In this document: positions 4,441-23,820 of the stretch, piece by piece | Layout: the number at the start of each line of letters is the position of its first letter | Numbering within the stretch: the stretch's first letter is position 1 | Source of the DNA: Macrostomum lignano | Taxonomy: Eukaryota | Direction of reading: 5' to 3' | Assembly (NCBI GenBank): GCA_002269645.1 | Contig: NIVC01002557.1 | Coordinates: 1 to 28,799 of the forward strand | DNA length: 28,799 bases | Notes under the pieces: model-generated | What the model saw: only the letters and a program-made list of their open reading frames with translations | Told to the model about the DNA's origin: nothing | Databases searched by the model: none | Translations under genes and position numbers: made by a program

Positions 4441-6867
4441 TCACAACAGCTGCATACGGGACCGCCGCCCGATCTCTATTGTCTCATGATCGGAGCAGAG
4501 AAATGTGGTAATCAAGCAGTCCTGGCAGAGTCGCACTACGCGCCTGCAGCAGAGAAGCTCAGTCTGGCTCTGCGTGAGTGCAACCTCCCAGCCAGCACCG
4601 GTGGTGCTGAAAGTGTTCCACAAGCCCTGCCCGTTGGCAGCCAGCATCCGACTGAACAGGCGATTCAATAGCGACGTGTGAGAGCCGGCAGCTGACCGCT
4701 GAACGGCAGTGGCAACGGTTTGCTTGACGATGCCCAGAATCTGCCGGCGCTTAGCTGAGTCCAACTTCGCCAGCCAGAAAGCAGCTAGCTTCGGCCGGTA
4801 GAACTTCCAGTTCTGCCGAATCTGCTGCAGTATTTCAGCAGCCTCTGCTGGTGACTTTCCAGGAAATTGGATGCTGACCTCGGTTATTTGCTTCAACAGT
4901 TGCCGGGCTGTTTCATCTGAGGAGGTAGCAGCAGATTTCTGCTCTGACTGCGTCTCTAGCACAGCCGTAAGTTGCTGTTGGGAAGCATTGCTTTGCCTCA
5001 AATCGGATGTGGCGGTAGACTGGCCTTTGCTTCGACTTGAAAGACGCACATTCGGGAAACGGGAAGTAGAAGGGCGAGACTGAAAGCTTCTCGAACCAAA
5101 AGTTGACACCGTCCGCGAGGTAGGAGGTCGCCTCATTTGTCGATCCAGGGGTTTCGTCTCACTGGTGTCATTGTCGCAACTGGTAGAAAAGATAGAGTCT
5201 TCCGACTCGGACTCAGAACTGGCACTCGGATCGTCAACCGGAGCTCCATTCAGCTCGGCTAGCATTTCTGCAAGTTCGTCAACACCCGGACTAGCTGAAT
5301 TGTATCTACTTTCCAGTTCTTTAAGCAGAGTCGGAGCTCGGCCCTCCATTGCCGAGACAAACAACTGCATCAATAGTCGAGTGTAGCTCTCTTGTCGCAT
5401 CCGGTCATCGCAAGGAAAAACGCGGCGGAATCGATGGCAGGTCCGCGACTCGCGGTCTTCTGCCTGAGCCTCCCTGCGAAGCCGCTGCAGTTGAGCACTC
5501 AAGTCTGCTCGACGCCTTATCAGCTGGCGTCGATGAGCTGACTCTGGTGTCGCGGCGCTACCGCACTGCAGCAATCTCCTCTGGGCCTCCGCCTTCTGAA
5601 CAGCTTGGTTGCGCCGCCGGTCTGATAGCCGGATGTTCAATAAGCTCAGCGCCTCCTCTAACATTCCTAGCTTTACTTTCCTGTCGATCGGCTCATCAAT
5701 GCCAAAACTGGGCGATCGATTGACTTCCAACAACCAGGGCTTCAGCTTGTGATCCAGCATGATGTCAAAGCCGAGAATTTCGAAGCAGACGGACCTGGCT
5801 CCGGGGGGTGCACCAGGTCGGCACAGACGGTACTGCAGTAGCACCTGAGGGTACGCCACCAGCACTGTTTTGATGATAAGGTCAATGATGCTTCGCCACA
5901 GCTTCGCCACATCATGGTCCCGTTGCTGCAAGTATTCATTAAGAAATCGGATGGATCTTTTACTTCCTGTGCTATCGTCTGCGCCTTTCTCGTATTGGCC
6001 GCTGCGCTTGTTGATCGAATAGTTGGTCAGGTGCATGCACGGCCGGTCAGTTGCAGTCCCGCGAGGATCCTCATACTTTTCTGTGCTGAGTCGCAAGAGG
6101 CCGTCATTGTAAAAGAATATACGCAGCGGATCGCACGAAGTCACCAGGACGTAGATGCGAAGGTCACATTTAAAGCCATCTACTAGGAAGGGCTTGTCTA
6201 AATAGCGCTGAACTATGGAACTGCTTTCGGGAGTGACCGGTACCTGCTCACCACTCCTGTAGACACGAATACCGTGGCCCATGGCCCCGTTCGCCGGCTT
6301 GCTGATAAACACTGGCCGCTTCCCAGCCGACTTGGAGTCTCTTAGGAACTGCTGGAACTGTGCACTCTCCTGTGGCAGACACCAAGTCTGCGGCACAAAG
6401 TTGAACTCCAGCGGTTGCAGCCGCGCAGCCCGAGCCATATTTCGGCCTAAACTGTCCTTTCGACTGATCTCCCCCATGCCTGGGAAGTGGTTCACCCGCT
6501 GGTATCCCTTCAGCTCCGAGATGCGGTCCACAGGCACAGGTGCGTCGCTCCACACCAGCATTGCTGAAGAGAAGTCGTCATCGTGGCAGCGCACAGACCC
6601 GGCTCGCTCAGCCGCCAATTGCACTGCAGCGAACTTGCAGGCACTCAGGTTAATAGAAATTCTCTTTCTCCGCCGCTGGTGACTGCTGCCAACACTGGAT
6701 TTGCCATCGCCGCCGACACTGCTACAGTCTTCATCAGTTGCTGCAGGAATCGATGTAGTCCGATGAGGCTGGGCCAGCGATACCTGCGATGAAGATGGGG
6801 ACAAGGGCAGCCGGCGGATTGGCGGTCGGGCCGCTGCACTGCAGGTTTGAGGCCGAGTTGGCAGCAT
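4441..6867 (-). CDS. TTLL7: Tubulin polyglutamylase TTLL7 orthologue, 808 aa, single coding exon
   Basis: TTL/ATP-grasp motifs YQRVNHFPGMGEISRKD, KPANGAMGHGI, VQRYLDKPFLVDGFKCDLRIYVLVTSCDPL, MHLTNYSINK, GSKRS and CFEILGFDIMLDHKLKPWLLEVNRSPSF. TTLL7-typical segments CRPGAPPGARSVCFE, QKAEAQRRL (cationic microtubule-binding region) and C-terminal FWLAKLDS...GQGLWN...CCRRVVRLC. The ORF-track start at 6882 is TTG; the first ATG is 6867, with an in-frame TAA upstream. Confidence 0.95.
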   Translation of the reverse strand: MLPTRPQTCSAAARPPIRRLPLSPSSSQVSLAQPHRTTSIPAATDEDCSSVGGDGKSSVGSSHQRRRKRISINLSACKFAAVQLAAERAGSVRCHDDDFSSAMLVWSDAPVPVDRISELKGYQRVNHFPGMGEISRKDSLGRNMARAARLQPLEFNFVPQTWCLPQESAQFQQFLRDSKSAGKRPVFISKPANGAMGHGIRVYRSGEQVPVTPESSSIVQRYLDKPFLVDGFKCDLRIYVLVTSCDPLRIFFYNDGLLRLSTEKYEDPRGTATDRPCMHLTNYSINKRSGQYEKGADDSTGSKRSIRFLNEYLQQRDHDVAKLWRSIIDLIIKTVLVAYPQVLLQYRLCRPGAPPGARSVCFEILGFDIMLDHKLKPWLLEVNRSPSFGIDEPIDRKVKLGMLEEALSLLNIRLSDRRRNQAVQKAEAQRRLLQCGSAATPESAHRRQLIRRRADLSAQLQRLRREAQAEDRESRTCHRFRRVFPCDDRMRQESYTRLLMQLFVSAMEGRAPTLLKELESRYNSASPGVDELAEMLAELNGAPVDDPSASSESESEDSIFSTSCDNDTSETKPLDRQMRRPPTSRTVSTFGSRSFQSRPSTSRFPNVRLSSRSKGQSTATSDLRQSNASQQQLTAVLETQSEQKSAATSSDETARQLLKQITEVSIQFPGKSPAEAAEILQQIRQNWKFYRPKLAAFWLAKLDSAKRRQILGIVKQTVATAVQRSAAGSHTSLLNRLFSRMLAANGQGLWNTFSTTGAGWEVALTQSQTELLCCRRVVRLCQDCLITTFLCSDHETIEIGRRSRMQLL

Positions 6868-6890: not shown

Positions 6891-7300
6891 CCTGCATTAG
6901 CGGGGCATTAATTTTAATTATTCCGCTTCTGCACAGGTCAGCTTGACTCGCCAGTGTTTGCCTGTTTCTGCCGGCCCTTGCACCAGAAACACCAGATTCT
7001 CAGTCTCGCTCACTATGAAGCCAGCACACTGTACTGTCTCTCTCAATTGCTGTCCACTTTCTCTGTTTTGACGGGATTGGTAGACGGCCCATGCTTTAGT
7101 TTTTGGAGTTTCTCTCTCGCATCGCGCATTCTGCCTCCATATCTCTTACCTCTACCTCTCTCACCTTAGCAACCAGACCGCAATGCGTGGTTCTGCTCCG
7201 GACTCCGCCCCTCCTCATGCAGCGACCAATTCAGACCGCCCGCTCCCTCCGCACTCTCTCTCTCTGAGTTCTTTCCTCTGCCCCTCAACTACACAATCTC
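6891..7300 (-). promoter_or_regulatory. Putative TTLL7 promoter, non-coding first exon and 5-prime UTR intron
   Basis: GC boxes (ccgccc at about 7205 and 7236) and CCAAT (7226-7230). Minus-strand donor consensus GAG|GTAAGA at 7150/7149, with an alternative AAG|GTGAGA at 7165/7164. Acceptor ctaatgcag| at 6892/6891, 24 nt before the ATG. Inferred from motifs only. Confidence 0.4.
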
Positions 7301-8325
7301 TGAGTACAACAAATTGCCTCATTCAATAGACTGCTTCACCTCATTATCAGCCTAGCTGTCGCCCTCCCATTCTCGCTCAATGACAGAGGCCGCTACACAT
7401 TCAAAGAATAGTGGCGTGATGATCACGAAGCTGAACGGTCAGACTTTGCAAGACCATGATGCTTCTAGCTGTCTCGGTTCATTCTCAGGCTAGGAAGGAA
7501 TCTAGTTAGCAAAGCCAGAGCTCTGGTATTCACCTACATTGAAGCCAATAGAAAATGAGCATTTTCAACCCCTGCCAGAAAATTTGCAATCATGCCGGCC
7601 AGATCTATAGCACAGAACTGCGTGGGCTTTTGCGTAGGACCTAGACGGAAGCTTATGGACTGTGGCCCAAGATCTACATAAAAAATTCATGCACTGTAGG
7701 CCGATTTGCGTGGGCTAACGTCACTCACAAGAAAATTACAAACCTATGTATGCTACTCATCGCAACTATTTTGCTAGTAGTACAAGAAAAATGAAAAAGG
7801 TGCCGAAGATCTCTGTCCCCAATGACTCAATGAGGCACGAGAATTCGCCGTAAATCCCATCATACGAGCTATGTCTACCTTCCGCTTGACGCTCCGAAGC
7901 TCCGAAGCTCAAGTGCATATAGACTTTGATTTGGACAGAAAAATTACTGTGGCTTAAAGAATTTTTAAATAAACAGGTTGCTGAATTTAAACCAAAAAAC
8001 GCCGATACTGACACAAGTCCTTGTTGTTTCTACACTTTGTTTCGTATTTATCTTTCTTATTCCATCAGGTTTATTTAATCGCTGCAAAAGCAATCCCGCG
8101 GTTAAAAAATAATAATTGCTTACAAAAAGCTCTCGCTGTTTTGTTGCATTAGCTGAGAAAACTGCTTCGTGGTTCAGAGATGTGTTTTCAAATAAAAGCT
8201 AACTATGACTGATCTGAGAAATAAAGCAGTTCAAATAAAGCAGTTCAATGTGTTCGCAGTGGGCTGAGTCAGTCAGAGACTATCATTGCCAACAGTCGAA
8301 GCGAAGCAGTCGTTGCTTGATCAAC

Positions 8326-9449
8326 TCAGACGCCCAGAGCATTGGTCGGAGAGACCAGACGGCAAACCAGGGCCACCACAGCCACTGCAGCAAAGGCGAT
8401 TGACAGCGCGAATGGCCTGGCTGTCTGATCTGCCGTGGAGGACGCCGATTCTTTCTCTTTACTTGATGGGGTGAACGAGTCCAGAGACGGCGGGGGTGGC
8501 GCAGGCGACGGCGGCAATTCAATCTTTACCGGCGGCAGAGGCGGGCTGTTGGAGTTGTCTTTAAGGTTGCACAGATCGGTGTCACATGTTTTGCAGTTCT
8601 GCCAGTTCAGTTTGTCACAGTGCAGTTGGCACCCGACCAGGAAGTGCTAAAGTAGAGTGCGCGGAGTTCTGTAGTAGAATACTGGATGAATATCGTGAAA
8701 AAAGCTTGAAAAACTTGAAAGGAGAAAATAAACGAGGGGAAAGGAATCTCTGAATTATTGCTACTGCCAAGTACAATTTTCAAAAAAGTACTCTTCGATA
8801 AACCCCAACTCATTTCTATGATCCCTTTTCTATGAACCATCTCAGTCTCACCTCTGCATCGGTCGGGTTGGGGCTGGAGATGCATGGCATATCTTTCGGG
8901 CACAAGACAGGCACAGGAAGCGGGCCGATTGTAGTATTGAGGGAGTTGTAGCATAGCAGATACTTCGTAACGTTTGACTTGAGCTCGTTGCCATACTCGA
9001 CGTTGCAGTGGTCCTTAAAGCACTCGCGGCACTCAACGCTGTTTTTATCGAATTTTCCGCACTTGCCACAGCCGAAGTACATCTCCTACGAGTATAAGCA
9101 TAAATTATGGTGATTCAGCTGTAGTCTCTTGAATTTTAACTCTGAAATAAATTCATGCAGCGCGACTCACGAAAAATCCTGGATTTGTTTCCCAATTTAT
9201 CCTGCGCTTCTCAACGCAAGCGTTTCCAACTGCCTGGCATGTGTGGGCCTCTGCAGGAAAGTCAACACCGATAGTCGAGTGGTTGCCTGTGTAGCACGTG
9301 AGGGCTTCAGCAGTCTGAGTCGCGGCTGTGGGTTGGCAAATATATTTATATAAATTTCGCTTCAAATATTGCAATAGAAATCGAGTTCGTATCTGCATCA
9401 TTTACTCACCAAGCAGAACTCCAAGCAGCAGATACAGAAGCGTCAACAT
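8326..9449 (-). CDS. Secreted, membrane-anchored protein with two Ly6/uPAR (three-finger)-like 8-Cys domains, 249 aa, 4 exons (copy 1)
   Basis: Exons 9449-9410, 9325-9171, 9085-8852 and 8646-8326 (750 nt) are joined by GT-AG introns of 84, 85 and 205 nt with matching phases (1, 0, 0). Product: signal peptide MLTLLYLLLGVLLAATQTAEA; domain 1 LTCY...FGCGKC...CRECFKDHCN; domain 2 LLCY...VGCQLHC...CKTCDTDLCN; three N-glycosylation sequons (NHS, NVT, NTT); Pro/Ser stalk; hydrophobic tail FALSIAFAAVAVVALVC. Confidence 0.88.
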
Positions 9450-9974
9450 CTTCAAAGGCGAGTGAAAAACGAGACCCAGTGATCAAAGCCACACTAAAGC
9501 AGAGAATGAGATGATTGAGTTCTCTAAGCTTCAGTAATTGAAAGTTCTTATGCTTTGCTCTTTCCACTTACTGTTAGGAGGCGAGAGACTGAATTTTCGC
9601 GTGGGAAATCGGTAGGATTGGCCATAGACATGCTGCTCAGGCTTTTGTTTTTCTGTTTTGCGCGAGAGATGCCTCTACGATCGATAGAAAGGAAAATATT
9701 TTCTAGGGCACTGAGAATGCTATCATGGGCGAGACTATCTATTACTGAGAGAGACACGCATTTGCAGAGGCACCCACGGACCGTTGGCGCTACTGGCATA
9801 AGCCATGCATGGTGCCTTTGCAATACTTTTCTGTGTGTTGGAACCGGGCATCTGCATGGTCTAGAAGTGGCTGCAATAGACAGTGGGATGCAATTCAAAC
9901 CGGTCATTTTTTATTTCTTCACATTTTAAAAATGGCTCTACAAAATACAGATTATAAAAGTACAAGGCAACTAC

Positions 9975-10130
9975 TGGCGGATCCAGGGGTTCAAGAGGGT
10001 CGGCTGAGTCAAGAGAGGCAACGACATTCACAGGGCGCGTTTCAGAGCCTGGGCGCGGATGTAGGCGGCACTGCCTGCAGTGTCCGGGGCGCCGGCATCA
10101 GCCACGAAATGCCGAGTGCACCTGTCTTTT
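9975..10130. mobile_element. Possible MITE-like terminus or fragment (also at about 20869-21024)
   Basis: GGCGGATCCAGGGG terminus-like motif followed by a GC-rich tract and tandem arrays. No partner TIR was found. Confidence 0.25.
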
Positions 10131-10133
10131 TTA

Positions 10134-10489
10134 GCAATCCCCCGTAAGCCTCGACATCTCAGCGACTCCCTCGTGAGCACTGAAATCTCAGTAATTCCCC
10201 AGTAAGCCTTGACATCTCAGCAATTCCCCTAGTAAGCACCCCCAAATAGCAAGCACCCCAGACAGCAAGCATCCCCCTGATAGCAAGCATCCCCCTGATA
10301 GCAAGCATCCCCCTGATAGCAAGCATCCCCTTGATAGCAAGCATCCCCCAGATAGCAAGCATCCCCCTCGATAGCAAGCATCCCCCCTCTATAGCAAGCA
10401 TCCCCCAGATAAGCAGGCATCCACCAGATAGCAAGCATCCACCAGATAGCAAGCATCCCCCAGATAGCAAGCATCCCCCAGATAGCAAG
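10134..10489. repeat. Compound minisatellite: about 3.5 degenerate ~30-bp units, then about 13.5 x 18-bp units (gatagcaagcatccccca)
   Basis: Directly visible tandem units. The 18-bp array spans about 10246-10489. Confidence 0.95.
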
Positions 10490-10692
10490 TAGCTAGTGCA
10501 ACAATTTCCTCAGCTAGTGCTAATTCCTTTCTCAGCTAGCGCTTCAGAGACTGATTGAGCTGGCTTGTTGACGATGGAGAATCCATGGCGCAGGCCAACA
10601 CGGAGAAACTCCGCATTCAAATCGCAGGCTCCCAGGCTGATGACGAGAGTGACAAGGTCGAGGCCAGCGGCTGGATTGGCGACTGAGATGTC

Positions 10693-10782
10693 GGCTGAGA
10701 CTGAGACTGTCCGAGTGAGGCTGAGACTGAGACTGTCCGAGTGAGGCTGAGACTGAGACTGTCCGAGTGATACTGAGACTGT
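10693..10782. repeat. 26-bp tandem repeat x3 (ggctgagactgagactgtccgagtga)
   Basis: Units at 10693, 10719 and 10745, plus a degenerate partial unit. Confidence 0.95.
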
Positions 10783-12299
10783 TCTCTGCTATGAGAATGA
10801 GTGAAGCTGACGTGTTCAAAACAGCCAGAGTTTGCCATGATGCTGTCAGTGTTGCATCCTGCTTTCAGGCGCTATTGAACCAAGGAGTGCTGACACTGCC
10901 CTCAATTAGAAGGTTGATTTCGATCTCTAGTCCTCTTTCTGTGGACCCTGGTGTCTGACGAGCGGTACATTCACCTGCAAAGTAAGGAACTGCCGATCGC
11001 AGAGTGCAGCGTGAATCTAATACTCGATGAGATTCATCCTAACATAACATGCGTATTGAATCTTCCACTGGAAGAGTGGACTCATTCACCAAGAAAGAAT
11101 TTATTTTAATAGAAGTAAAATAACTGCAATAATGATGCAATTAGTTTAATTTCCAAGTCCATATACTAATTTGAACTCAAAATTAGTCGTTGCTCAGCTT
11201 TAAACAGAAAAAGCACTGCGGGAATGGAATTCAATGGGAATTCCTATACTCCTATAATCCTATACGCGTATTTTCAACTCGGCCCGGTTATGTTAAAGTC
11301 CAAAAAAGTCTTCAATTCCATACGAGTGTACATGTAAGCTAGTACATTTCTACGAGTATGCTTGAACAGTGCTTCGAAAGCCTTGAAGTACTGATAGTGA
11401 GCAGCCCTGGAAAGGGAAGGGAAGGAAGAGGAGCAGAGAGGAGTAGAAAAGTAAGGGGGGATTGTATCGAGCTGTTGAGACGAGCTTGCACTTTGTAAAC
11501 CGTTAACTGGGACCCAAGCAGAAGCTGGAACTGTGCCTTCACTGCCCGCGGATGGCTTCCCGACTCCTCCAATCCCAACCCCTCAGCCCCGACCCCCGCT
11601 TCAACTTGCGATACGCTTGTGGTCACAAGTTGCCAAAAAGTCACGCAACTCTCTCACTATCTTACTAAATAATCTTTCTGACCTGATTATTTGCAAAACA
11701 GGCCGCAGAATACTGTAATTCTTAACCCATGGGTATCTGGGTTTGGGTTGGCGGTTTTCAATGTTGCTGAGTTATCTGAGTATATATTCTATGAATATGA
11801 TTAAGTTAACAGAAAAGAATGAACCGTCTCGAGTGTGCGGAAAGAAGCAAATACTCGTAAATTTTGGTCAAATTTCTAATTTCAATGGATGTTAACAAAA
11901 TGTGGGAGTGCTACTAACTTTGCTCGAAAAATCTGCGCATTTGGAATACTCTGTCACGACTCACGAGTGAAGGCAGTGGTAATAGTAATATAGTATGGAG
12001 GTCAGGCTGGCAAAGGTGAGCCACATATTCAGATTTTAGCTTCGCCAGCAATTATGTAACACAGCGCTGGCCAAGCCCAAAACGATTGCGTAGATCGTAC
12101 CAATGCTATGTATAAGCTTTGTAGCGAGGCCTGTGACTAACAAAAGACAGACATGAATGGCAGGCTTGTGCAATGCATTGCATGATTACAATACAATATG
12201 TTAAACCCACTAACCAGAAAAGCCTGGGGATCAAGCAGATGAAGTTTGAATCCGAGTGTACAGGCTGACAGAGGAAAGCTCTTATGCGACCTTGGCGCC

Positions 12300-12845
12300 A
12301 GCCAATAGCAGCTGGGCGGCCGCACATTTCGTGATCAGTGTACGCACAACCCGCTGTACACTCTGGAATGAACACACTCGCTCATTCCTCTCTTGTTACC
12401 CACCCGCCCTTCATTTAAGACCGCACACGGCCTGCCCCATAGCCTTGCATTCAGTTCTTCCCTTCCTCAGTCTGCCGCGAGCCAGGGAAGTTTGCGGAAC
12501 CGGTTTGGCTCTTTGACCGAGAGGAAGGCGAGGAAAGTTACAAGCTTCTTGACCGCGAAGTGAGCTGAAGGCTCAAGGTAATCGATTCTGTTTTTCGAAT
12601 TTTCAGCTTCAATCTTTTTATTTGTAAGCTTTAAGATTTGTAATGCATTAATACTGGGCCTAAGAATCAGCAACCGTTTTTTGTTATTTCATCAGAATTA
12701 ATAGCAGTTTGAGTGACCAGTCCGACACGAACGGAACAAAAACTGACTGAGCTTTCGATCAGCTAAATGGGGTACTTGTGGAGTGAACTCCACTTGCGCA
12801 CTCCAAAGACTCAAATGCCAATGCTTTTATAAACTGTCACCTCAG
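12300..12845 (+). promoter_or_regulatory. Putative PPP1R3 promoter, non-coding exon 1 (about 12451-12577) and 268-nt 5-prime UTR intron (12578-12845)
   Basis: CCAAT, CAGCTG and GGGCGG cluster at 12303-12320, GC box at about 12403-12409, and initiator-like TCAGTT at 12451. The ATG-free segment ends in donor AAG|GTAATC, followed by an AT-rich intron and acceptor cacctcag|. The same is present at 23193-23738. Confidence 0.55.
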
Positions 12846-12859
12846 CTGAGCGAGCCCGG

Positions 12860-12913
12860 ATGCGCTGGACTCGCCTTCGGACTGCCACCCCGGCCCTGCC
12901 GGCACCCCGGTGA
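12860..12913 (+). CDS. Upstream ORF (17 aa, MRWTRLRTATPALPAPR) in the PPP1R3 leader
   Basis: First ATG after the predicted acceptor. Weak context (C at -3 and +4). Stop lies 14 nt before the main ATG. Translation is not demonstrated. The copy is at 23753-23806. Confidence 0.4.
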   Translation: MRWTRLRTATPALPAPR

Positions 12914-12927
12914 GAACCCAGGTTGGC

Positions 12928-13975
12928 ATGGACGAGGGCATTTCGGAGCCCGCGCTGCCGCAGGCCAGGGACAGCAGCGGCTGCCCGGCTGGAGACTGCG
13001 GCTCCAGCAGCGAGGGCTACGCCACATCGCAGGACAGCCTCGTGGCCTCCTCGGAGACGCTCAGCTTTGCCAGCGAGGACGCGCCGAGCGATGAGGCACA
13101 GAAGCTGGACAGTCTGAGTCTGGCGCTGCAGGAGCTGCGCTACGAGAAGCTTCCCCCACCGCAGCCGCTGGCCATTCAGACTCAACGCCAGAAGCCGGTC
13201 GGTGCTAGCAAGCAGCTGCAGCAGCAGCGTCGCTCCTCTTCCATGAAGTCCCAGAAGACGCCGCCGGGCACGCCGAACCAGATGAAGAAGGTCGTCCGCT
13301 TTGCCGATGCGTTCGGGCTCGACCTGGCTTACGTGAAGCACGTTTTCGATACCGAGAACCCGCCGGTGATCCCACCGCAGGCTACTCGGGACCTTGATTT
13401 GCCCGAAGCTACAGCTGCCGCGATCTCCCGTCTCCGGTGAGCCGCGAATTCTGTGTTCCCAATTATTTCATTTCTATAACTCGCTTTCTAATAAACTGCA
13501 TTGAAGCAGGCCGGAGCCTCTTGAGCGACGCCTGTTCAGTAGCCCATGCTTCGCTCAGCCCGGTGGCTGCGCCAGCTTCATGTCGCGCGTGCTGGCCCAG
13601 CGGGTGGTGCTGGAGCGGGCGAGCGCTACGCAGCCCAGCGGTCGCATTCACGGCCTCGTGCGCGTGGCCAACCTGGGCTTCGAGAAGTCCGTGATGGCTC
13701 ACGCTACCTTCGATGGCTGGCGCAGCTGCATCGACGTGCCCGCCGTCTATGTCGAGGGCTCCAGCACCGGCGCCACGGACCAGTTTTCATTCACACTGCC
13801 GCTGCCGCAGAGTTTCGGCGTGGGCGACCGGGTCTTCCTCTGCGTTCGCTACTGCATCGGCGGAGAGACCTTCTGGGACAACAACTTCGGCGAGAACTAC
13901 GCCTTCGACTGCTTCGCTGTCAACACCGTCAGCGGCGGCGGCACCACCGGGCCCGCCTGCTCGCGTTTTTTGTGA
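12928..13975 (+). CDS. PPP1R3: Protein phosphatase 1 glycogen-targeting regulatory subunit (PPP1R3/CBM21 family), 324 aa, 2 coding exons (copy 1)
   Basis: Exons 12928-13436 and 13510-13975, with a 73-nt GTGAGC...GCAG phase-2 intron that joins two ORF-track ORFs in frame (975 nt). PP1-binding RVxF motif KKVVRFADAFGLDL. CBM21 motifs GLVRVANLGFEKSV...TFDGW and FWDNNFGENY. The paralogue letter cannot be assigned. Confidence 0.95.
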
Positions 13976-15192
13976 GCTGCAGGCAGGGCTCAAGCTCAAG
14001 TGACCAACCCTCCCGAATCCCATCCCTAGTGCCCTAACAGATTCAGAATCTCCTCATGCGAAATATGTCGCTGTGATGTTAAATGCGATGATTTCGTTTC
14101 GAGTCGAATCTTACTTGAATTTCTCCCCCACCCTCCATATTATTTCCCTCTTCTGCTCCATAAAAATGTCTGGCCCTTGTAAAATTAATTTCCCGAGTTG
14201 TCCTTCAGCCCTGGTGAATGACTTTCAGTATCACGAGTTTTAGCTTTACAGGCTGAGGCGCTCGCAGCAGCCACAGAGCATCGCAGCTCTGAGCTACTCG
14301 ATGCATCCTCATTGTTCCGGTCAGCTTCCTATAGTTTCCCGCCCCAGTCTTGCCATTGGTGTGACCTCATTTAACCTCGTCTGTACGAAGCCATCAACGC
14401 GTATAACTCTTCATTAACACTCAGTGTGGCTCTTGCGAATAGTTCAATGTTTACCAATGATGCAGGACGAAACGGACTGCAACTTGTTTACCCCCCAAGT
14501 GTTGGCCAACTGCTCTTTAAATTGAATTTTTCGGCCTTAGGCTGAGTCCTATTAGATTTTCTGTCTACAAAATACAAATAGTTTTTTTTACTGTTGTTCT
14601 TTCATGATTTTTGCTCTTGCCTCAAGCAGCAGAGCGTCGCTCATCGCTCCTCATGTTGGGCTCGATATTGGCCCGCACCGCTTAGCTCCCGATTCGCTCA
14701 AATTATCTAGCCCCTCATCTTTTCTCATTCTGCCTAAAACAGTGTATTCTGAGCATAGCAACTAGGGTTAGGGTCTCTATTTTTAATAGTCGCTTGCTCG
14801 AGGCTGCCACGGCTTCAATGACATCGAGTTCGGAAGCTTTATTTAGTTCTGAAACTCGTTTCGAAATTGACTCCATAATTTTCCCTGTAGACAAATCAGT
14901 ATGGTTCAGCTCTCAAGAAGCAACTTGGTACGCATTTTAGGGAGCTCAGCTTATTCATTTTTGTACTAGAAATGTAGAAATTAGGCATTAGTAGGTGCGC
15001 ACCTAGGTTGGCTCATTGGACTGTGCCCAGCGCTCCCTTCATTGCGTGAAAATACACAGAATAGCCTAGCTGTGTTGCTTGCCGAGTATTTTGCTAAGCC
15101 TCCGCGAGCAAAAATCGAAAACGCTTCCAAGCGAACAAGTTGTTGCCTTGCTAAATTGCTTTGTTCTTCAACACTGTCCCTGACTTTATCAC

Positions 15193-15990
15193 TTTCACTG
15201 ACTTTCTGCCTCCTCCACCGACTCTTGCCTTCTTCACCGACTCTTGCCTTCTTCACCGACTCTTGCCTTCTTCACCGACTCTTTGCCTCCTTCACCGACT
15301 CTTGCCTTCTTCACCGACTCTTTGCCTCCTTCACCGACTCTTGCCTTCTTCACCGACTCTTTGCCTCCTTCACCGACTCTTGGCCTCCCTCACCGACTCT
15401 TGCCTTCTTCACCGACTCTTTGCCTCCTTCACCGACTTTTTACCTTCTTCACCGACTCTTGCCTTCTTCACCGACTCTTGCCTTCTTCACCGACTCTTGG
15501 CCACCTTCACCGACTCTTGGCCTCCTTCACCGACTCTTGCCTTCTTCACTGACTTTCTGCCTCCTCCACCGACTCTTGCCTTCTTCACCGACTCTTTGCC
15601 TCCTTCACCGACTTTTTACCTTCTTCACCGACTCTTGCCTTCTTCACCGACTCTTGCCTTCTTCACCGACTTTTTACCTTCTTCACCGACTCTTGCCTTC
15701 TTCACTGACTTTCTGCCTCCTCCACCGACTCTTGCCTTCTTCACCGACTCTTGCCTTCTTCACCGACTTTTTACCTTCTTCACCGACTCTTGCCTTCTTC
15801 ACCGACTCTTGCCTTCTTCACCGACTCTTGCCTTCTTCACCGACTCTTTGCCTCCTTCACCGACTCTTGCCTTCTTCACCGACTTTTTACCTTCTTCACC
15901 GACTCTTGCCTTCTTCAGCGACTCTTGCCTTCTTCACCGACTCTTGCCTTCTTCACCGACTCTTTGCCTCCTTCACCGACTCTTGGCCAC
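15193..15990. repeat. 19/20-bp pyrimidine-rich minisatellite, about 40 units (ccttcttcaccgactcttg and variants)
   Basis: Directly visible. It decays into diverged units to about 16080 and generates the spurious 277-347 aa ORFs. Confidence 0.98.
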
Positions 15991-16910
15991 TTAGCCAACT
16001 TCAACGACTCTTAGTCAACTTTACCACCAACTCTTGGCCTCTGTCACCAACTTTTAACCACCCCAATAGCCTCATCAACTCATGAGGAGGTTGACTTGTT
16101 CTCACTTTTCATATAACTCCTTGGCGCTGCAGTGATCTCTAGTCACTTCTTTGACAACTCACTGATAGGAGCGTATGTTAAATATTATATTTTAATCCTT
16201 AGGTTTATGTCACCTTAACACCCTTAGAATCTTCGAAAATTTCCCTCAGAAACGCTAATGACTGTTTTCCCATTCAGGATCCGCTGAAAGCAGAATCGTT
16301 AATTCGAATAATGTTAGATTCGTTCCAAAGAAAAAATCCATCAATTCTGGTCTTGAAGTCGCAGATAAAACCAAAGAGAGCTGCAAAACTGCAGCGGCTG
16401 CTTGCTGCTTGCGATCTCTTATAGACGGCTTAAAGAGCTCTTAAAATGCTAAATGTATGTACAGTCGAGCCGTCTCAGCTACTGCAAACTGATCACTCGC
16501 ATAAGAGGCACTTCGCTTACATTCCTAAGCCATGTGTAAACTTAGAAATGAGAAAAAGCTACAGAAATAAAAATGCTGCAATAAGAGATACAAACAAAGG
16601 GAAATAACTCAAAGCGGGCTCGTCAGCACCTCACTCAAGATGCACCAAAATACGCATGAAAGCTAGTGAACAAACTGAGGAGAATAGGCTTGCAGGCTCA
16701 ACTGCACAGTCATTCCTCAACAGCTAATAACACGCTAATAGCAGAATGGTAAACTAAAGAAAGTTTCCGTGCATATTTACATGCATATACATTTATACAC
16801 TTACTTTCCCTGTACTTAATCTATGAGCGGCGTGAAGCTTTGGCATTTGTGGTGTAAATTATTTCGCCTCGAAGATGCATTCCTCAGCCTGCAGGAAATG
16901 CACAACCGTA

Positions 16911-17774
16911 TCACGGGGTCCTGAGGCACCGCGTCAACAACTCCGCGAGACAGTTTCGAAGTCTATTGAGAACGCCATTCACACCTTCACCGGCCTTGAC
17001 GCTGAATTCCTCCCTCCCGAGTCCTTGAGCCTCCACGTTTGCCGTCTGGTTGCGGGAGGACGCAGCTACAGTTACTGCCTTCTGAATCTTGGAATCCGAG
17101 ACGCTTATCCCGCCTTCCTGATTCACAATCACAAAGCTGTTCTCATTGTCCGCTTCATCACTGACAGGAGTCTTCACTGTCTCGTAGACATCAGCCGCAG
17201 GTGGCAGTGCCACGGCCAAGACGGTTTGCCCCGACATCCGGTCTGAATCACTGCAGCTCATCTCGGCGGTAGTGCCACCCGCTGCGGGAGTTGCATAGCT
17301 GGTTGGCTTGCTCACACCACTGCAGCCGCTGCTGCAGATGGTGATGCAGATGGAATGCTGGCTGGTTCCTTCGCGACTGTTGGACGCCACCCGAGCTGAC
17401 TGGCTGGCTGCCAAAGAAGAAAGCTCGGCCTCTACCGATGCGGTCCTGTAGCCACTGCTGCCGTGACTGCGCCCTGCGGTTGAGGCCGTCCTAGAGGTGC
17501 TGCAGAGCGGCAGGTAGGTCCAGGATGACTGGTGCAGCCGTCTGGGCCTCTGCTGCGGCTGCCGCTTACGGAGCAGTAGGCGGGATTTCTGAATGTCGTA
17601 GCGGACGATGCCGACCGATTTCCAAGTTGATGTTGAAGCTGAGGTCTTTGCCTTGTGGCGCGTCGGTGACCGGCTTTTAATCGGCATGTCCGCCCTCTGC
17701 TTCACTGCTGCTGGCATTAGCGGAGATGCTGTGCGCACTGAGCTGCACCGCTGCTCTGATCGAACGAAGCTTCT
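16911..17774 (-). pseudogene. 5-prime-truncated copy of orphan Ser/Thr/Ala-rich ORF (gene X, copy 1)
   Basis: Open from the duplication junction to TGA at 16913-16911. It lacks the ATG and first codons present in copy 2 (MSS). It is a GC-rich block with sharp AT-rich flanks and could still be translated from the internal ATG (MPAAVKQ). No recognisable domain. Confidence 0.55.
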
Positions 17775-18956
17775 CTTACCTCTACCTCTCTCACCTTAGC
17801 AACCAGACCGCAATGCGTGGTTCTGCTCCGGACTCCGCCCCTCCTCATGCAGCGACCAATTCAGACCGCCCGCTCCCTCCGCACTCTCTCTCTCTGAGTT
17901 CTTTCCTCTGCCCCTCAACTACACAATCTCTGAGTACAACAAATTGCCTCATTCAATAGACTGCTTCACCTCATTATCAGCCTAGCTGTCGCCCTCCCAT
18001 TCTCGCTCAATGACAGAGGCCGCTACACATTCAAAGAATAGTGGCGTGATGATCACGAAGCTGAACGGTCAGACTTTGCAAGACCATGATGCTTCTAGCT
18101 GTCTCGGTTCATTCTCAGGCTAGGAAGGAATCTAGTTAGCAAAGCCAGAGCTCTGGTATTCACCTACATTGAAGCCAATAGAAAATGAGCATTTTCAACC
18201 CCTGCCAGAAAATTTGCAATCATGCCGGCCAGATCTATAGCACAGAACTGCGTGGGCTTTTGCGTAGGACCTAGACGGAAGCTTATGGACTGTGGCCCAA
18301 GATCTACATAAAAAATTCATGCACTGTAGGCCGATTTGCGTGGGCTAACGTCACTCACAAGAAAATTACAAACCTATGTATGCTACTCATCGCAACTATT
18401 TTGCTAGTAGTACAAGAAAAATGAAAAAGGTGCCGAAGATCTCTGTCCCCAATGACTCAATGAGGCACGAGAATTCGCCGTAAATCCCATCATACGAGCT
18501 ATGTCTACCTTCCGCTTGACGCTCCGAAGCTCCGAAGCTCAAGTGCATATAGACTTTGATTTGGACAGAAAAATTACTGTGGCTTAAAGAATTTTTAAAT
18601 AAACAGGTTGCTGAATTTAAACCAAAAAAACGCCGATACTGACACAAGTCCTTGTTGTTTCTACACTTTGTTTCGTATTTATCTTTCTTATTCCATCAGG
18701 TTTATTTAATCGCTGCAAAAGCAATCCCGCGGTTAAAAAATAATAATTGCTTACAAAAAGCTCTCGCTGTTTTGTTGCATTAGCTGAGAAAACTGCTTCG
18801 TGGTTCAGAGATGTGTTTTCAAATAAAAGCTAACTATGACTGATCTGAGAAATAAAGCAGTTCAAATAAAGCAGTTCAATGTGTTCGCAGTGGGCTGAGT
18901 CAGTCAGAGACTATCATTGCCAACAGTCGAAGCGAAGCAGTCGTTGCTTGATCAAC

Positions 18957-20080
18957 TCAGACGCCCAGAGCATTGGTCGGAGAGACCAGACGGCAAACCA
19001 GGGCCACCACAGCCACTGCAGCAAAGGCGATTGACAGCGCGAATGGCCTGGCTGTCTGATCTGCCGTGGAGGACGCCGATTCTTTCTCTTTACTTGATGG
19101 GGTGAACGAGTCCAGAGACGGCGGGGGTGGCGCAGGCGACGGCGGCAATTCAATCTTTACCGGCGGCAGAGGCGGGCTGTTGGAGTTGTCTTTAAGGTTG
19201 CACAGATCGGTGTCACATGTTTTGCAGTTCTGCCAGTTCAGTTTGTCACAGTGCAGTTGGCACCCGACCAGGAAGTGCTAAAGTAGAGTGCGCGGAGTTC
19301 TGTAGTAGAATACTGGATGAATATCGTGAAAAAAGCTTGAAAAACTTGAAAGGAGAAAATAAACGAGGGGAAAGGAATCTCTGAATTATTGCTACTGCCA
19401 AGTACAATTTTCAAAAAAGTACTCTTCGATAAACCCCAACTCATTTCTATGATCCCTTTTCTATGAACCATCTCAGTCTCACCTCTGCATCGGTCGGGTT
19501 GGGGCTGGAGATGCATGGCATATCTTTCGGGCACAAGACAGGCACAGGAAGCGGGCCGATTGTAGTATTGAGGGAGTTGTAGCATAGCAGATACTTCGTA
19601 ACGTTTGACTTGAGCTCGTTGCCATACTCGACGTTGCAGTGGTCCTTAAAGCACTCGCGGCACTCAACGCTGTTTTTATCGAATTTTCCGCACTTGCCAC
19701 AGCCGAAGTACATCTCCTACGAGTATAAGCATAAATTATGGTGATTCAGCTGTAGTCTCTTGAATTTTAACTCTGAAATAAATTCATGCAGCGCGACTCA
19801 CGAAAAATCCTGGATTTGTTTCCCAATTTATCCTGCGCTTCTCAACGCAAGCGTTTCCAACTGCCTGGCATGTGTGGGCCTCTGCAGGAAAGTCAACACC
19901 GATAGTCGAGTGGTTGCCTGTGTAGCACGTGAGGGCTTCAGCAGTCTGAGTCGCGGCTGTGGGTTGGCAAATATATTTATATAAATTTCGCTTCAAATAT
20001 TGCAATAGAAATCGAGTTCGTATCTGCATCATTTACTCACCAAGCAGAACTCCAAGCAGCAGATACAGAAGCGTCAACAT
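18957..20080 (-). CDS. Two-domain Ly6/three-finger-like membrane-anchored protein (copy 2)
   Basis: Exons 20080-20041, 19956-19802, 19716-19483 and 19277-18957. No difference from copy 1 was seen. Confidence 0.88.
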
Positions 20081-20350
20081 CTTCAAAGGCGAGTGAAAAA
20101 CGAGACCCAGTGATCAAAGCCACACTAAAGCAGAGAATGAGATGATTGAGTTCTCTAAGCTTCAGTAATTGAAAGTTCTTATGCTTTGCTCTTTCCACTT
20201 ACTGTTAGGAGGCGAGAGACTGAATTTTCGCGTGGGAAATCGGTAGGATTGGCCATAGACATGCTGCTCAGGCTTTTGTTTTTCTGTTTTGCGCGAGAGA
20301 TGCCTCTACGATCGATAGAAAGGAAAATATTTTCTAGGGCACTGAGAATG

Positions 20351-20613
20351 ATATATTCCTGCACGGTCACGAGTGCGGGAATGACATCTGCACGAGTGCG
20401 CGCTAGCGCACGAGTGCACGATGTCCTTCACGCACGAGTGAACGTGAAGGAATTCCATTGTCGGATGATTCATCGTGCAGGAATGCACAAAACCGTGCAG
20501 GAATGCATTTCTGCGCCTAATGCTTTTTCAGTGAGATTTTACCATAGACATCCATTCCTGCACGCAAAAGAGTGCAAGAATCCCATTCTTGCATGGAAAA
20601 TCAGCCGACAATG
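20351..20613. other. 263-bp repeat-rich, self-complementary segment present only in copy 2
   Basis: Copy 1 reads gagAATGctatc (9714-9725). Copy 2 reads gagAATG-[259 bp]-AATGctatc. The offset between copies jumps from 10631 to 10894. Confidence 0.95.
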
Positions 20614-21027
20614 CTATCATGGGCGAGACTATCTATTACTGAGAGAGACACGCATTTGCAGAGGCACCCACGGACCGTTGGCGCTACTGGCATAAGCCAT
20701 GCATGGTGCCTTTGCAATACTTTTCTGTGTGTTGGAACCGGGCATCTGCATGGTCTAGAAGTGGCTGCAATAGACAGTGGGATGCAATTCAAACCGGTCA
20801 TTTTTTATTTCTTCACATTTTAAAAATGGCTCTACAAAATACAGATTATAAAAGTACAAGGCAACTACTGGCGGATCCAGGGGTTCAAGAGGGTCGGCTG
20901 AGTCAAGAGAGGCAACGACATTCACAGGGCGCGTTTCAGAGCCTGGGCGCGGATGTAGGCGGCACTGCCTGCAGTGTCCGGGGCGCCGGCATCAGCCACG
21001 AAATGCCGAGTGCACCTGTCTTTTTTA

Positions 21028-21383
21028 GCAATCCCCCGTAAGCCTCGACATCTCAGCGACTCCCTCGTGAGCACTGAAATCTCAGTAATTCCCCAGTAAG
21101 CCTTGACATCTCAGCAATTCCCCTAGTAAGCACCCCCCAAATAGCAAGCACCCCAGACAGCAAGCATCCCCCTGATAGCAAGCATCCCCCTGATAGCAAG
21201 CATCCCCCTGATAGCAAGCATCCCCTTGATAGCAAGCATCCCCCAGATAGCAAGCATCCCCCTCGATAGCAAGCATCCCCCTCTATAGCAAGCATCCCCC
21301 AGATAAGCAGGCATCCACCAGATAGCAAGCATCCACCAGATAGCAAGCATCCCCCAGATAGCAAGCATCCCCCAGATAGCAAG
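21028..21383. repeat. Compound ~30-bp/18-bp minisatellite (copy 2)
   Basis: Matches 10134-10489 except for two compensating C-run indels. Confidence 0.95.
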
Positions 21384-21586
21384 TAGCTAGTGCAACAATT
21401 TCCTCAGCTAGTGCTAATTCCTTTCTCAGCTAGCGCTTCAGAGACTGATTGAGCTGGCTTGTTGACGATGGAGAATCCATGGCGCAGGCCAACACGGAGA
21501 AACTCCGCATTCAAATCGCAGGCTCCCAGGCTGATGACGAGAGTGACAAGGTCGAGGCCAGCGGCTGGATTGGCGACTGAGATGTC

Positions 21587-21676
21587 GGCTGAGACTGAGA
21601 CTGTCCGAGTGAGGCTGAGACTGAGACTGTCCGAGTGAGGCTGAGACTGAGACTGTCCGAGTGATACTGAGACTGT
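21587..21676. repeat. 26-bp tandem repeat x3 (copy 2)
   Basis: Matches 10693-10782. Confidence 0.95.
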
Positions 21677-23820
21677 TCTCTGCTATGAGAATGAGTGAAG
21701 CTGACGTGTTCAAAACAGCCAGAGTTTGCCATGATGCTGTCAGTGTTGCATCCTGCTTTCAGGCGCTATTGAACCAAGGAGTGCTGACACTGCCCTCAAT
21801 TAGAAGGTTGATTTCGATCTCTAGTCCTCTTTCTGTGGACCCTGGTGTCTGACGAGCGGTACATTCACCTGCAAAGTAAGGAACTGCCGATCGCAGAGTG
21901 CAGCGTGAATCTAATACTCGATGAGATTCATCCTAACATAACATGCGTATTGAATCTTCCACTGGAAGAGTGGACTCATTCACCAAGAAAGAATTTATTT
22001 TAATAGAAGTAAAATAACTGCAATAATGATGCAATTAGTTTAATTTCCAAGTCCATATACTAATTTGAACTCAAAATTAGTCGTTGCTCAGCTTTAAACA
22101 GAAAAAGCACTGCGGGAATGGAATTCAATGGGAATTCCTATACTCCTATAATCCTATACGCGTATTTTCAACTCGGCCCGGTTATGTTAAAGTCCAAAAA
22201 AGTCTTCAATTCCATACGAGTGTACATGTAAGCTAGTACATTTCTACGAGTATGCTTGAACAGTGCTTCGAAAGCCTTGAAGTACTGATAGTGAGCAGCC
22301 CTGGAAAGGGAAGGGAAGGAAGAGGAGCAGAGAGGAGTAGAAAAGTAAGGGGGATTGTATCGAGCTGTTGAGACGAGCTTGCACTTTGTAAACCGTTAAC
22401 TGGGACCCAAGCAGAAGCTGGAACTGTGCCTTCACTGCCCGCGGATGGCTTCCCGACTCCTCCAATCCCAACCCCTCAGCCCCGACCCCCGCTTCAACTT
22501 GCGATACGCTTGTGGTCACAAGTTGCCAAAAAGTCACGCAACTCTCTCACTATCTTACTAAATAATCTTTCTGACCTGATTATTTGCAAAACAGGCCGCA
22601 GAATACTGTAATTCTTAACCCATGGGTATCTGGGTTTGGGTTGGCGGTTTTCAATGTTGCTGAGTTATCTGAGTATATATTCTATGAATATGATTAAGTT
22701 AACAGAAAAGAATGAACCGTCTCGAGTGTGCGGAAAGAAGCAAATACTCGTAAATTTTGGTCAAATTTCTAATTTCAATGGATGTTAACAAAATGTGGGA
22801 GTGCTACTAACTTTGCTCGAAAAATCTGCGCATTTGGAATACTCTGTCACGACTCACGAGTGAAGGCAGTGGTAATAGTAATATAGTATGGAGGTCAGGC
22901 TGGCAAAGGTGAGCCACATATTCAGATTTTAGCTTCGCCAGCAATTATGTAACACAGCGCTGGCCAAGCCCAAAACGATTGCGTAGATCGTACCAATGCT
23001 ATGTATAAGCTTTGTAGCGAGGCCTGTGACTAACAAAAGACAGACATGAATGGCAGGCTTGTGCAATGCATTGCATGATTACAATACAATATGTTAAACC
23101 CACTAACCAGAAAAGCCTGGGGATCAAGCAGATGAAGTTTGAATCCGAGTGTACAGGCTGACAGAGGAAAGCTCTTATGCGACCTTGGCGCCAGCCAATA
23201 GCAGCTGGGCGGCCGCACATTTCGTGATCAGTGTACGCACAACCCGCTGTACACTCTGGAATGAACACACTCGCTCATTCCTCTCTTGTTACCCACCCGC
23301 CCTTCATTTAAGACCGCACACGGCCTGCCCCATAGCCTTGCATTCAGTTCTTCCCTTCCTCAGTCTGCCGCGAGCCAGGGAAGTTTGCGGAACCGGTTTG
23401 GCTCTTTGACCGAGAGGAAGGCGAGGAAAGTTACAAGCTTCTTGACCGCGAAGTGAGCTGAAGGCTCAAGGTAATCGATTCTGTTTTTCGAATTTTCAGC
23501 TTCAATCTTTTTATTTGTAAGCTTTAAGATTTGTAATGCATTAATACTGGGCCTAAGAATCAGCAACCGTTTTTTGTTATTTCATCAGAATTAATAGCAG
23601 TTTGAGTGACCAGTCCGACACGAACGGAACAAAAACTGACTGAGCTTTCGATCAGCTAAATGGGGTACTTGTGGAGTGAACTCCACTTGCGCACTCCAAA
23701 GACTCAAATGCCAATGCTTTTATAAACTGTCACCTCAGCTGAGCGAGCCCGGATGCGCTGGACTCGCCTTCGGACTGCCACCCCGGCCCTGCCGGCACCC
23801 CGGTGAGAACCCAGGTTGGC

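Follow-up and report, generated by a model that had tools for sequence, protein, structure and literature searches.

Two divergent, probably three-finger domains and a predicted GPI anchor in the product of a four-exon gene of Macrostomum lignano

Contig NIVC01002557.1 of the Macrostomum lignano assembly GCA_002269645.1 raises the question of what is encoded on its minus strand between positions 9449 and 8326. The whole contig, 28,799 bp in length, was analysed and is referred to below as the window. A preliminary description, made by reading the letters, had placed here a hidden gene for a surface protein with two tandem three-finger domains of the Ly6/uPAR type. The answer that is considered likely is that the locus holds a real gene belonging to a family of M. 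lignano, and that its product would be a glycosylphosphatidylinositol (GPI)-anchored protein carrying two divergent three-finger domains and serving as a binding module.

The gene is composed of four exons that run from 9449 to 8326, with a coding sequence (CDS) of 750 nucleotides and a product of 249 residues when re-translated from the contig. Exon 1 (9449-9410, 40 nucleotides) begins with the ATG and covers 13 1/3 codons of the signal peptide; the phase-1 position at which it ends is shared by the paralogues. Intron 1 (9326-9409, 84 nucleotides, GTGAGT donor and ..CCCACAG acceptor) thus interrupts the signal peptide after codon 13, in phase 1. Exon 2 (9325-9171, 155 nucleotides) encodes the remaining signal peptide up to A21 (9325-9303) together with the first two thirds of domain 1 (L22-F65, 9302-9171). 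It is followed by intron 2 (9086-9170, 85 nucleotides, GTGAGT donor and ..CTCGTAG acceptor), which lies in phase 0 after F65. Exon 3 (9085-8852, 234 nucleotides) contains the C-terminal third of domain 1 (E66-N93, 9085-9002), an inter-domain linker of 14 residues (9001-8960) and residues L108-E143 of domain 2 (8959-8852). Intron 3 (8647-8851, 205 nucleotides, GTGAGA donor and ..ACTTTAG acceptor) is again in phase 0, after E143. Finally, exon 4 (8646-8326, 321 nucleotides including the stop codon) encodes the C-terminal third of domain 2 (H144-N170, 8646-8566), a Pro/Ser-rich stalk (8565-8434) and a GPI-signal-like tail (approximately S215-V249, 8433-8329) that ends at the TGA (8328-8326).

The N-terminus of the protein is hydrophobic, MLTLLYLLLGVLLAATQTAEA, and is followed by LTCY. 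Domain 1 (9002-9302, residues 22-93, 72 residues) is split by intron 2; it starts with LTCY, ends with CRECFKDHCN and possesses eight cysteines at positions 24, 43, 50, 71, 74, 84, 87 and 92. Domain 2 (8566-8959, residues 108-170, 63 residues), split by intron 3, starts with LLCY, ends with CKTCDTDLCN and contains its eight cysteines at positions 110, 127, 133, 149, 153, 161, 164 and 169, one further cysteine (238) being located in the tail. Introns 2 and 3 both stand five residues ahead of the fourth cysteine of their own domain and fall in the same column of the domain alignment. The preliminary description had proposed a phase-consistent four-exon gene for 249 residues, two domains of eight cysteines with an LxCY start and a CxxCxxDxCN end, and a phase-0 intron five residues before the fourth cysteine of each domain. 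All of these were reproduced, including the exons, the GT..AG sites and the phases (1, 0, 0). It had overlooked that the boundary between the two domains is devoid of intron, exon 3 bridging both of them.

An end-to-end identical protein of 249 residues is present in GenBank as 'hypothetical protein BOX15_Mlig018694g1/g2', under two accessions. The annotation of GCA_002269645.1 is a genome-guided transcriptome (StringTie and TACO on RNA sequencing data, with a mapped de novo transcriptome) whose open reading frames were called by TransDecoder (PMC5730564). Since it was built from transcripts, the identical annotated model brings indirect RNA evidence for all three junctions. The gene at 8326-9449 is genuine, protein-coding and spliced, and its model is far beyond chance because the same protein exists in GenBank and because the paralogues described below keep the cysteines and the intron positions.

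The GenBank CDS on NIVC01002557.1 does not sit at 8326-9449 but at 18957-20080, on a tandem copy of the gene. This second copy, also on the minus strand (exons 20080-20041, 19956-19802, 19716-19483 and 19277-18957), has exons identical to those of the first copy, from which it is separated by 10.6 kb; the copies are 99.9% identical and the second one was missed by the preliminary description. They belong to a head-to-tail tandem duplication with a unit of about 10.6-10.9 kb. Unit 1 extends over 7142-17774 and unit 2 over 17772-28665, the latter being 99.9% identical to the former apart from an insert of about 253 nucleotides at 20355-20606. The matching blocks, both 99.9% identical, are 7142-9723 versus 17772-20354 and 9713-17774 versus 20607-28665. 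Because of this head-to-tail duplication, each gene in the unit is present twice, including the one considered here. The exact protein has one accession per contig and no called gene overlaps 8326-9449, so the copy at this place appears to be itself un-annotated. The claim of a hidden, unannotated gene therefore stands for this copy, which appears to lack a CDS; it fails for the gene and its family, since GenBank has CDSs, labelled hypothetical proteins, for the twin copy and all paralogues. The novelty lies in the family assignment, the gene being already in GenBank without a family label.

The near identity of the two units leaves some room, well short of an even chance, for the copy at 8326-9449 being an assembly artefact in which haplotypes or homeologues were joined head to tail, that is, a redundant image of the annotated Mlig018694. 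The 99.9% identity of the units would fit, as would a third contig of 133 kb that bears the locus at 99.9% identity with no tandem duplication within the 21 kb compared, the presence of a single CDS per contig for the protein, and the report of 180 Mb of duplicated non-repetitive blocks in the assembly (PMC5730564). Nevertheless, the insert of about 253 nucleotides and a few substitutions separate the units and point to distinct molecules, the junction at 17772-17774 is embedded in a contiguous long-read contig, and genuine duplicated blocks exist in M. lignano, which became polyploid recently.

Relatives of the protein were sought by an exhaustive phmmer search of 1.84 billion (1.84e9) representative proteins. 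At E≤0.001 six proteins were retrieved, which were the query itself with its M. lignano relatives (five in all) and P0004. The latter, a repetitive protein of 2,159 residues, owes its E-value of 1.7e-25 to 23 short stretches and was dismissed as spurious on account of its repeats. A profile search built on full-length sequences brought in more models, all of them from M. lignano. It scored the best 8,000 candidates by shared words, a selection suspected of being skewed by the low-complexity linker, and it missed P0006, P0002 and P0010. Because known family members escaped it, the restriction to M. lignano rests mainly on the exhaustive single-sequence search. From these searches the family looks lineage-restricted, having been detected in M. 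lignano only. The suggestion of a lineage-specific subfamily was supported, all accepted homologues among the 1.84 billion representatives being paralogues from this species.

At least five lineages can be distinguished in the family, namely Mlig018694/Mlig024610, Mlig017558, Mlig011668, Mlig012756 and a group of messy models starting with EIECFTNG. At about 25-54% identity, the paralogues keep all 16 cysteines, with the exception of P0012 whose domain 2 is devoid of Cys5. They also keep the signal peptide, the two modules of eight cysteines, the linker, the hydrophobic tail and the final Asn of each module. This Asn, which follows the last cysteine (N93 and N170 in the query), is invariant in 12 of the 12 aligned domains. 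Outside the cysteines, conservation is highest in loop II of domain 1, which carries NW..PGFFE.YFGCG. This motif, conserved in three paralogue lineages, does not differ between Mlig018694 and Mlig017558; one Mlig011668 lineage (P0005) retains it, whereas P0014 has diverged there. Four paralogues were mapped to genomic loci. In all of them the signal peptide contains the phase-1 intron, Cys4 of each domain comes five residues after a phase-0 intron, and the two domains are not separated by an intron.

Some of the database entries for these paralogues call for a comment. The GenBank model of P0006 (Mlig012756, L007 4052-5434) contains a mini-exon of eight codons (IGTLAEIC) without an AG acceptor on one side or a GT donor on the other. 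The preceding exon also lacks a GT donor, and little of loop II is left in domain 1 of the model, which is probably wrong in this part. Automatic UniRef names of the paralogues (RanBP2-type, Ephrin_rec_like, Folate_rec, CVNH, Zf-3CxxC, SET and DUF753) do not agree with one another and found no confirmation in Pfam scans; they were rejected as noise arising from cysteine-rich sequence.

The two domains of the protein resemble each other. In a joint alignment of 12 domains, the eight cysteines and the intradomain introns of the two domains are in register, and hhalign of the domain-1 set against the domain-2 set gave E=6.4e-5 over the C-terminal third. An internal duplication, already put forward in the preliminary description and older than the paralogue family, is well supported by these comparisons because the cysteine frameworks, the position and phase of the introns and the hhalign score all agree.

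Regarding the location of the product, a signal peptide of 21 residues is predicted with the cleavage motif AEA|LTCY. At the other end, the query possesses a hydrophobic run (P221-C238, 18 residues) followed by the 11 residues RLVSPTNALGV. This combination of an N-terminal signal peptide and a C-terminal hydrophobic signal agrees with the surface-protein architecture that had been suggested. The tails of the paralogues consist of an uncharged hydrophobic run of 16-21 residues followed by 0-11 residues, with small residues (S/A/D/G) 6-10 positions upstream, and in the closest paralogue, P0010 (Mlig017558), the chain ends inside the hydrophobic run. A GPI anchor is predicted for the query and is probable in comparison with a transmembrane helix, because the tails are short, small residues stand upstream and P0010 ends within the run. 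Of the two options that had been left open for the C-terminus, the paralogue tails accordingly favour the GPI signal.

It is less likely, and on balance doubtful, that the product is instead a type I transmembrane protein with a span of 17-18 residues and a cytosolic RLVSPTNALGV that would possibly bind PDZ domains, the two three-finger-like domains being unchanged. An Arg directly after the hydrophobic run, followed by ten residues, is found in both the query and its homeologue, the tail is nearly unchanged between them (RLVSPTNALGV versus RLVTPTNALGV), and Sm29 of Schistosoma, whose double-domain architecture is given in PMC4492491, has been discussed both as GPI-anchored and as membrane-spanning. 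On the contrary, the run is short for a helix that crosses the bilayer, several paralogues contain a Pro within it, and the small residues 6-10 positions upstream are placed as at GPI omega sites. Moreover, the paralogue tails comprise 0, 3, 5, 7 or 11 residues without a shared C-terminal motif, and P0010, the closest one, ends inside the run. The PDZ-like LGV ending that had been pointed out is weak for the same reason, the paralogues having no common C-terminal motif, and found no support.

The fold of the domains was approached by structure prediction and by profile comparison. AlphaFold2 run on domain 2 with the 12-domain alignment returned a model with a predicted local distance difference test score (pLDDT) of 84.7 and a predicted template modelling score (pTM) of 0.66, made of two beta-hairpins, a short helix and a C-terminal strand. 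When this model was compared with the PDB by Foldseek, the 50 best matches were all three-finger folds (E 0.2-4, template modelling (TM) score 0.29-0.51), including snake toxins, uPAR, the ectodomains of BMPR-IA/ActRII/BMPRII, PSCA and Prod1; no match was obtained at E≤0.001. In the same way, the 12-domain profile searched against PDB sequences gave 15 matches at E≤10, of which 14 were three-finger toxins (best E=0.049). The alignments displayed cover most or all of the domain, and the two full-length ones among them are in cysteine register except for a displaced sixth cysteine. The domain-1 profile also had a three-finger toxin as top match in the PDB, at E=0.049. Toxin_cobra-type (PF21947) was the only Pfam family that matched more than one domain; three of the 12 were matched, below the cutoff, the best at E=0.0066 for an isolated domain, and the paralogue P0002 scored 14.9 bits against a cutoff of 25.3. 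In addition, global hhalign against human Ly6/uPAR-type (LU) domains placed seven of the eight cysteines on C3, C19, C26, C39, C45, C64 and C69 of CD59, which form the four core disulfides.

The structural model, the profile matches in the PDB and the recurrent Pfam match, each of them weak, agree with one another; domain 2 is likely to adopt a three-finger fold, and domain 1 would share it by homology to domain 2. Each domain is probably a very divergent LU fold that keeps the four core disulfides. The expected pairing would be C24-C50, C43-C71, C74-C84 and C87-C92 in domain 1 and C110-C133, C127-C149, C153-C161 and C164-C169 in domain 2. The Ly6/uPAR-like fold claimed by the preliminary description hence receives moderate support, which comes for domain 2 from AlphaFold2 and Foldseek; domain 1 was not confidently modelled and the sequence matches are sub-threshold. 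Membership of the Pfam families UPAR_LY6 (PF00021) or Toxin_TOLIP (PF00087) did not hold, no match being found at E≤10 in a scan that six human LU controls passed: CD59, LYNX1, SLURP1, LY6E, PSCA and LY6H score from E=1e-6 to 1e-17 against one or the other family. Likewise, DUF753 (PF05444), proposed in the preliminary description and given by UniRef as a name for P0006, matched neither P0006 nor the family at E≤10 in a 2025 copy of Pfam-A, in which the presence of the DUF753 model is unconfirmed.

Several results weigh against the reading as a GPI-anchored protein with two three-finger domains. In the Pfam scan, the query reached the gathering score of no family and gave no three-finger match even at E≤10. 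Every fold or sequence match is weak when taken individually (Foldseek E≥0.2 with TM scores of 0.29-0.51, profile E≥0.049). AlphaFold2 may be biased toward a fold that is abundant in its training set, and the full-length prediction, based on a three-sequence alignment, had a pLDDT of 35 and was unusable, leaving domain 1 without a confident model. A profile of domain 2 alone found no three-finger protein in the PDB, and with the domain-1 profile, zinc-ribbon ribosomal proteins scored about the same E-values as the toxins. Local hhalign against the six human LU domains aligned only CxxDLCN, with a probability of 22%, while the global probability was 8%. At the C-terminus, 11 residues beyond the hydrophobic run are long for a GPI signal. 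Finally, a search of full texts and supplements of M. lignano papers found no expression or functional data for Mlig018694, Mlig024610, Mlig017558, Mlig011668 or Mlig012756.

The comparison of Mlig018694 (8326-9449) with its homeologue Mlig024610 (L003 3001-4136) bears on both sides. It speaks for coding constraint, and hence for a functional gene, in the following way. Their exons are 97.5% and their introns 86-93% identical, with 19 differences in 750 coding nucleotides (2.5%) that result in 13 amino-acid changes, none of them at a cysteine. As many as 15 of the 19 differences lie in amino-acid-changing codons; the ratio of nonsynonymous to synonymous differences per site (pN/pS) is about 1.2, a figure drawn from 19 differences only that could, as a point against, mean relaxed constraint, and that suggests a fast or relaxed evolution at positions other than the cysteines. 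One pair of changes, N115D and T117N, abolishes an N-glycosylation sequon. Either a fast evolution of exposed loops or a relaxed constraint after genome duplication would fit these differences.

Very improbable is a fold other than the three-finger one, whether a cystine-rich fold of a new type or a module that resembles a zinc ribbon and is based on the CxxC...CxxC pairs (C71-x2-C74 ... C84-x2-C87). In its favour speak the lack of a Pfam match for the query, the sub-significant level of every three-finger match, the ribosomal proteins S27e and L33 found beside toxins by the domain-1 profile (E=0.07-0.2), weak Pfam matches to Zap1_zf2, IBR and Zn_ribbon_RPAB4 and the names 'RanBP2-type' and 'Zf-3CxxC' given to paralogues. 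Against it stand the signal peptide and the C-terminal membrane signal that put the domains outside the cell, where cysteines are disulfide-bonded rather than zinc-binding, the even number of cysteines (eight) per domain, which are arranged and spaced like those of the four core three-finger disulfides and precede an invariant Asn, the three-finger topology of the domain-2 model with no zinc ribbon among its 50 best PDB matches, and the 14 three-finger proteins among the 15 matches of the combined profile.

How then do the two domains compare with accepted LU domains? By the definition of Leth et al. 2019, an LU domain comprises 60-90 residues in a three-finger beta fold. Its ten plesiotypic cysteines form the bonds 1-5, 2-3, 4-6, 7-8 and 9-10, cysteines 8 and 9 being adjacent in CCxxxxCN, and an Asn comes directly after the last cysteine. 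Members have a secretory signal peptide, to which the anchored ones add a GPI signal at the C-terminus; the corresponding genes have a signal-peptide exon followed by a pair of exons for each LU domain, with flanking phase-1 introns (PMC6600238). With 72 and 63 residues, the M. lignano domains are within the size range, and the three-finger fold is found for domain 2 in the model (TM score 0.29-0.51, E≥0.2). Both end with the Asn after the last cysteine (N93 and N170). They have eight cysteines each, the 2-3 pair of loop 1 being absent as it is in many accepted members such as the short-chain toxins. Adjacent cysteines are not found, since CxxCxxxxCN occurs in both domains and in all paralogues. 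According to the profile alignments, the first cysteine of this CxxC is located two residues N-terminal of the canonical position, and a shift by two residues on a beta-strand would keep the side chain on the same face. As for the gene plan, the phase-1 intron of the signal peptide is present and agrees with the published LU plan (PMC6600238), as the preliminary description had stated of Ly6-family genes, but the inter-domain intron is missing and the intradomain introns are in phase 0.

Among known systems, the nearest described one is Sm29/SmLy6D of Schistosoma mansoni, a double-LU protein of the tegument. It likewise comes from a flatworm and combines a signal peptide with two LU-type domains in tandem and a hydrophobic or GPI signal at the C-terminus (PMC4492491). 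For a long time it too was regarded as unlike any family in sequence, and its three-finger fold came to light through sensitive searches and ab initio modelling (PMC4492491). Compared by description only, the SmLy6 proteins have canonical cysteines whereas the M. lignano family has CxxC instead of CC. No Schistosoma protein was present among the matches of the exhaustive phmmer search, and no sequence link to Sm29 was detected.

In vertebrates, uPAR/PLAUR, C4.4A/LYPD3, CD177, Haldisin and zebrafish two-LU proteins are GPI-anchored, contain tandem LU domains and are encoded with a signal-peptide exon and a phase-1 intron (PMC6600238); the M. lignano domain-2 model has uPAR chains among its best structural matches. 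Each domain of these vertebrate multi-LU genes has its own exon pair with phase-1 flanks, and the N-terminal domain is devoid of the 7-8 disulfide (PMC6600238). In contrast, the M. lignano gene possesses a domain-bridging exon, phase-0 internal introns and all four core disulfide positions in both domains, and lacks a UPAR_LY6 match. With CD59, LYNX1, SLURP1, LY6E, PSCA and Prod1 the domains share an LxC(Y) mature N-terminus, DLCN, the Asn after the last cysteine, a C-terminus that is probably of the GPI type and a size of 60-90 residues. These single-domain LU proteins differ by their 10 cysteines including the loop-1 pair, their adjacent CC and their clear Pfam scores. The eight-cysteine short-chain toxins of snakes resemble the M. 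lignano domains by the absence of the loop-1 disulfide and a near-equal spacing, and they provide the best profile matches and many of the best structural ones. Nevertheless, they are secreted single venom domains with an adjacent CC and no membrane anchor, and all matches to them are sub-threshold. The resemblance concerns the fold class only and nothing suggests toxicity. The protein is thus not of a new kind, tandem GPI-anchored LU proteins being well known; the M. lignano family is a strongly divergent and apparently lineage-restricted one.

LU proteins count among the most versatile extracellular binding modules of animals. Their targets include complement, proteases, ion channels, junctions and the cues of regeneration, and in parasitic flatworms they make up the main antigens of the surface. 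Three-finger proteins such as toxins, Lynx1 and CD59 usually make contact through loop II. For the M. lignano product, the following course may be proposed. It would enter the secretory pathway through the 21-residue signal peptide, the mature chain then starting with LTCY, and could receive up to three N-glycans at N28, N103 and N115. The C-terminal hydrophobic signal would be removed and a GPI anchor added, the site probably lying within S212-D218. The two disulfide-rich domains would thereby be displayed from the outer leaflet on the flexible Pro/Ser-rich stalk. By analogy with other LU proteins, the product may act as a membrane-tethered module whose finger loops bind or modulate another surface protein. 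In domain 1, the conserved aromatic loop II (NW..PGFFE.YF) is the best candidate for the contact surface, and both the binding function and the site are proposed on the strength of that analogy.

One may go further and imagine that the Mlig018694 family represents an undescribed Macrostomum subclass of LU proteins, characterized by CxxC in place of CC, a phase-0 intradomain intron and a domain-bridging exon, in which loop II docks a conserved membrane partner, although this is speculative and rather improbable. If it were true, loop II might bind a Cys-loop receptor or a channel in the manner of Lynx/QVR, or, in this regenerating flatworm, the receptor of a positional or regeneration cue in the manner of Prod1. 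On a more general level, the reading as a divergent double LU protein would illustrate how far an LU domain can drift while keeping its fold; the family combines a displaced cysteine and a reorganized exon plan with the absence of a Pfam match. At least five 'hypothetical proteins' of a flatworm used as a transgenic model thereby receive a structural identity that can be tested, and the schistosome double-LU tegument antigen Sm29 would gain a free-living outgroup. The practical gain is modest and consists in a better annotation and in a hidden Markov model with which other flatworms could be searched for LU proteins hidden in a similar way.

The surroundings of the gene contain other elements. 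The insert of about 253 nucleotides at 20355-20606 is found in copy 2 only, about 275 nucleotides upstream of its ATG, at a site between ..CACTGAGAATG and CTATCATGG.. with AATG at both junctions; it could be a small non-autonomous element. The locus is also present, at 99.9% identity, on the sister contig NIVC01002556.1, where a non-long terminal repeat retrotransposon of about 5.4 kb, of the long interspersed nuclear element (LINE) type, is inserted about 230 nucleotides upstream of the gene (L001 4393-9768; equivalent to about 9670-9682 in the window). It has an open reading frame of 948 residues that looks, by eye, like a reverse transcriptase with an RNase H-like C-terminal region, and a 13-bp target-site duplication, TGCCTCTACGATC. 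The insertion site is empty in both copies of the window, and the insert of copy 2 bears no relation to this LINE. An older UniRef model, P0021 ('Polyprotein', 722 residues), is a wrong fusion of the LINE with the 249-residue protein.

An intronless gene of 324 residues lies at 12928-13975 and again at 23821-24868, on the plus strand in both cases. It contains CBM_21/CBM53 domains and resembles a glycogen-targeting subunit of protein phosphatase 1. It is the neighbour on the 5' side of the three-finger gene and, being on the opposite strand, is transcribed divergently from it. Comparison with the sister contig allowed placing two more genes on the minus strand, a tubulin tyrosine ligase-like (TTL-family) gene of 808 residues at about 4441-6867 and the cut-off start of a SAM/SMAUG-like gene at 1 to about 527. 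The homeologue Mlig024610, on a contig of 546 kb, adjoins the same TTL-family gene. The neighbours examined in the window (CBM_21, TTL-family and SAM/SMAUG-like) gave no functional hint for the three-finger gene.

Several tandem repeats are also present in the window. A 19-nucleotide repeat (TTCACCGACTCTTGCCTTC), with about 41 copies and 87% matches, occupies 15194-15985 and 26087-26878 and shows an extreme strand skew (GC skew of about -0.5). An 18-nucleotide repeat is present in about 14 copies at 10230-10489 and 21124-21383, and a 34-nucleotide repeat in about seven copies at 165-389. Finally, the 2 kb between 1001 and 3000 have a G+C content of 29%, compared with 41-63% elsewhere in the window; from its position, this stretch may be an intron or an intergenic spacer between the TTL-family and SAM/SMAUG-like genes.

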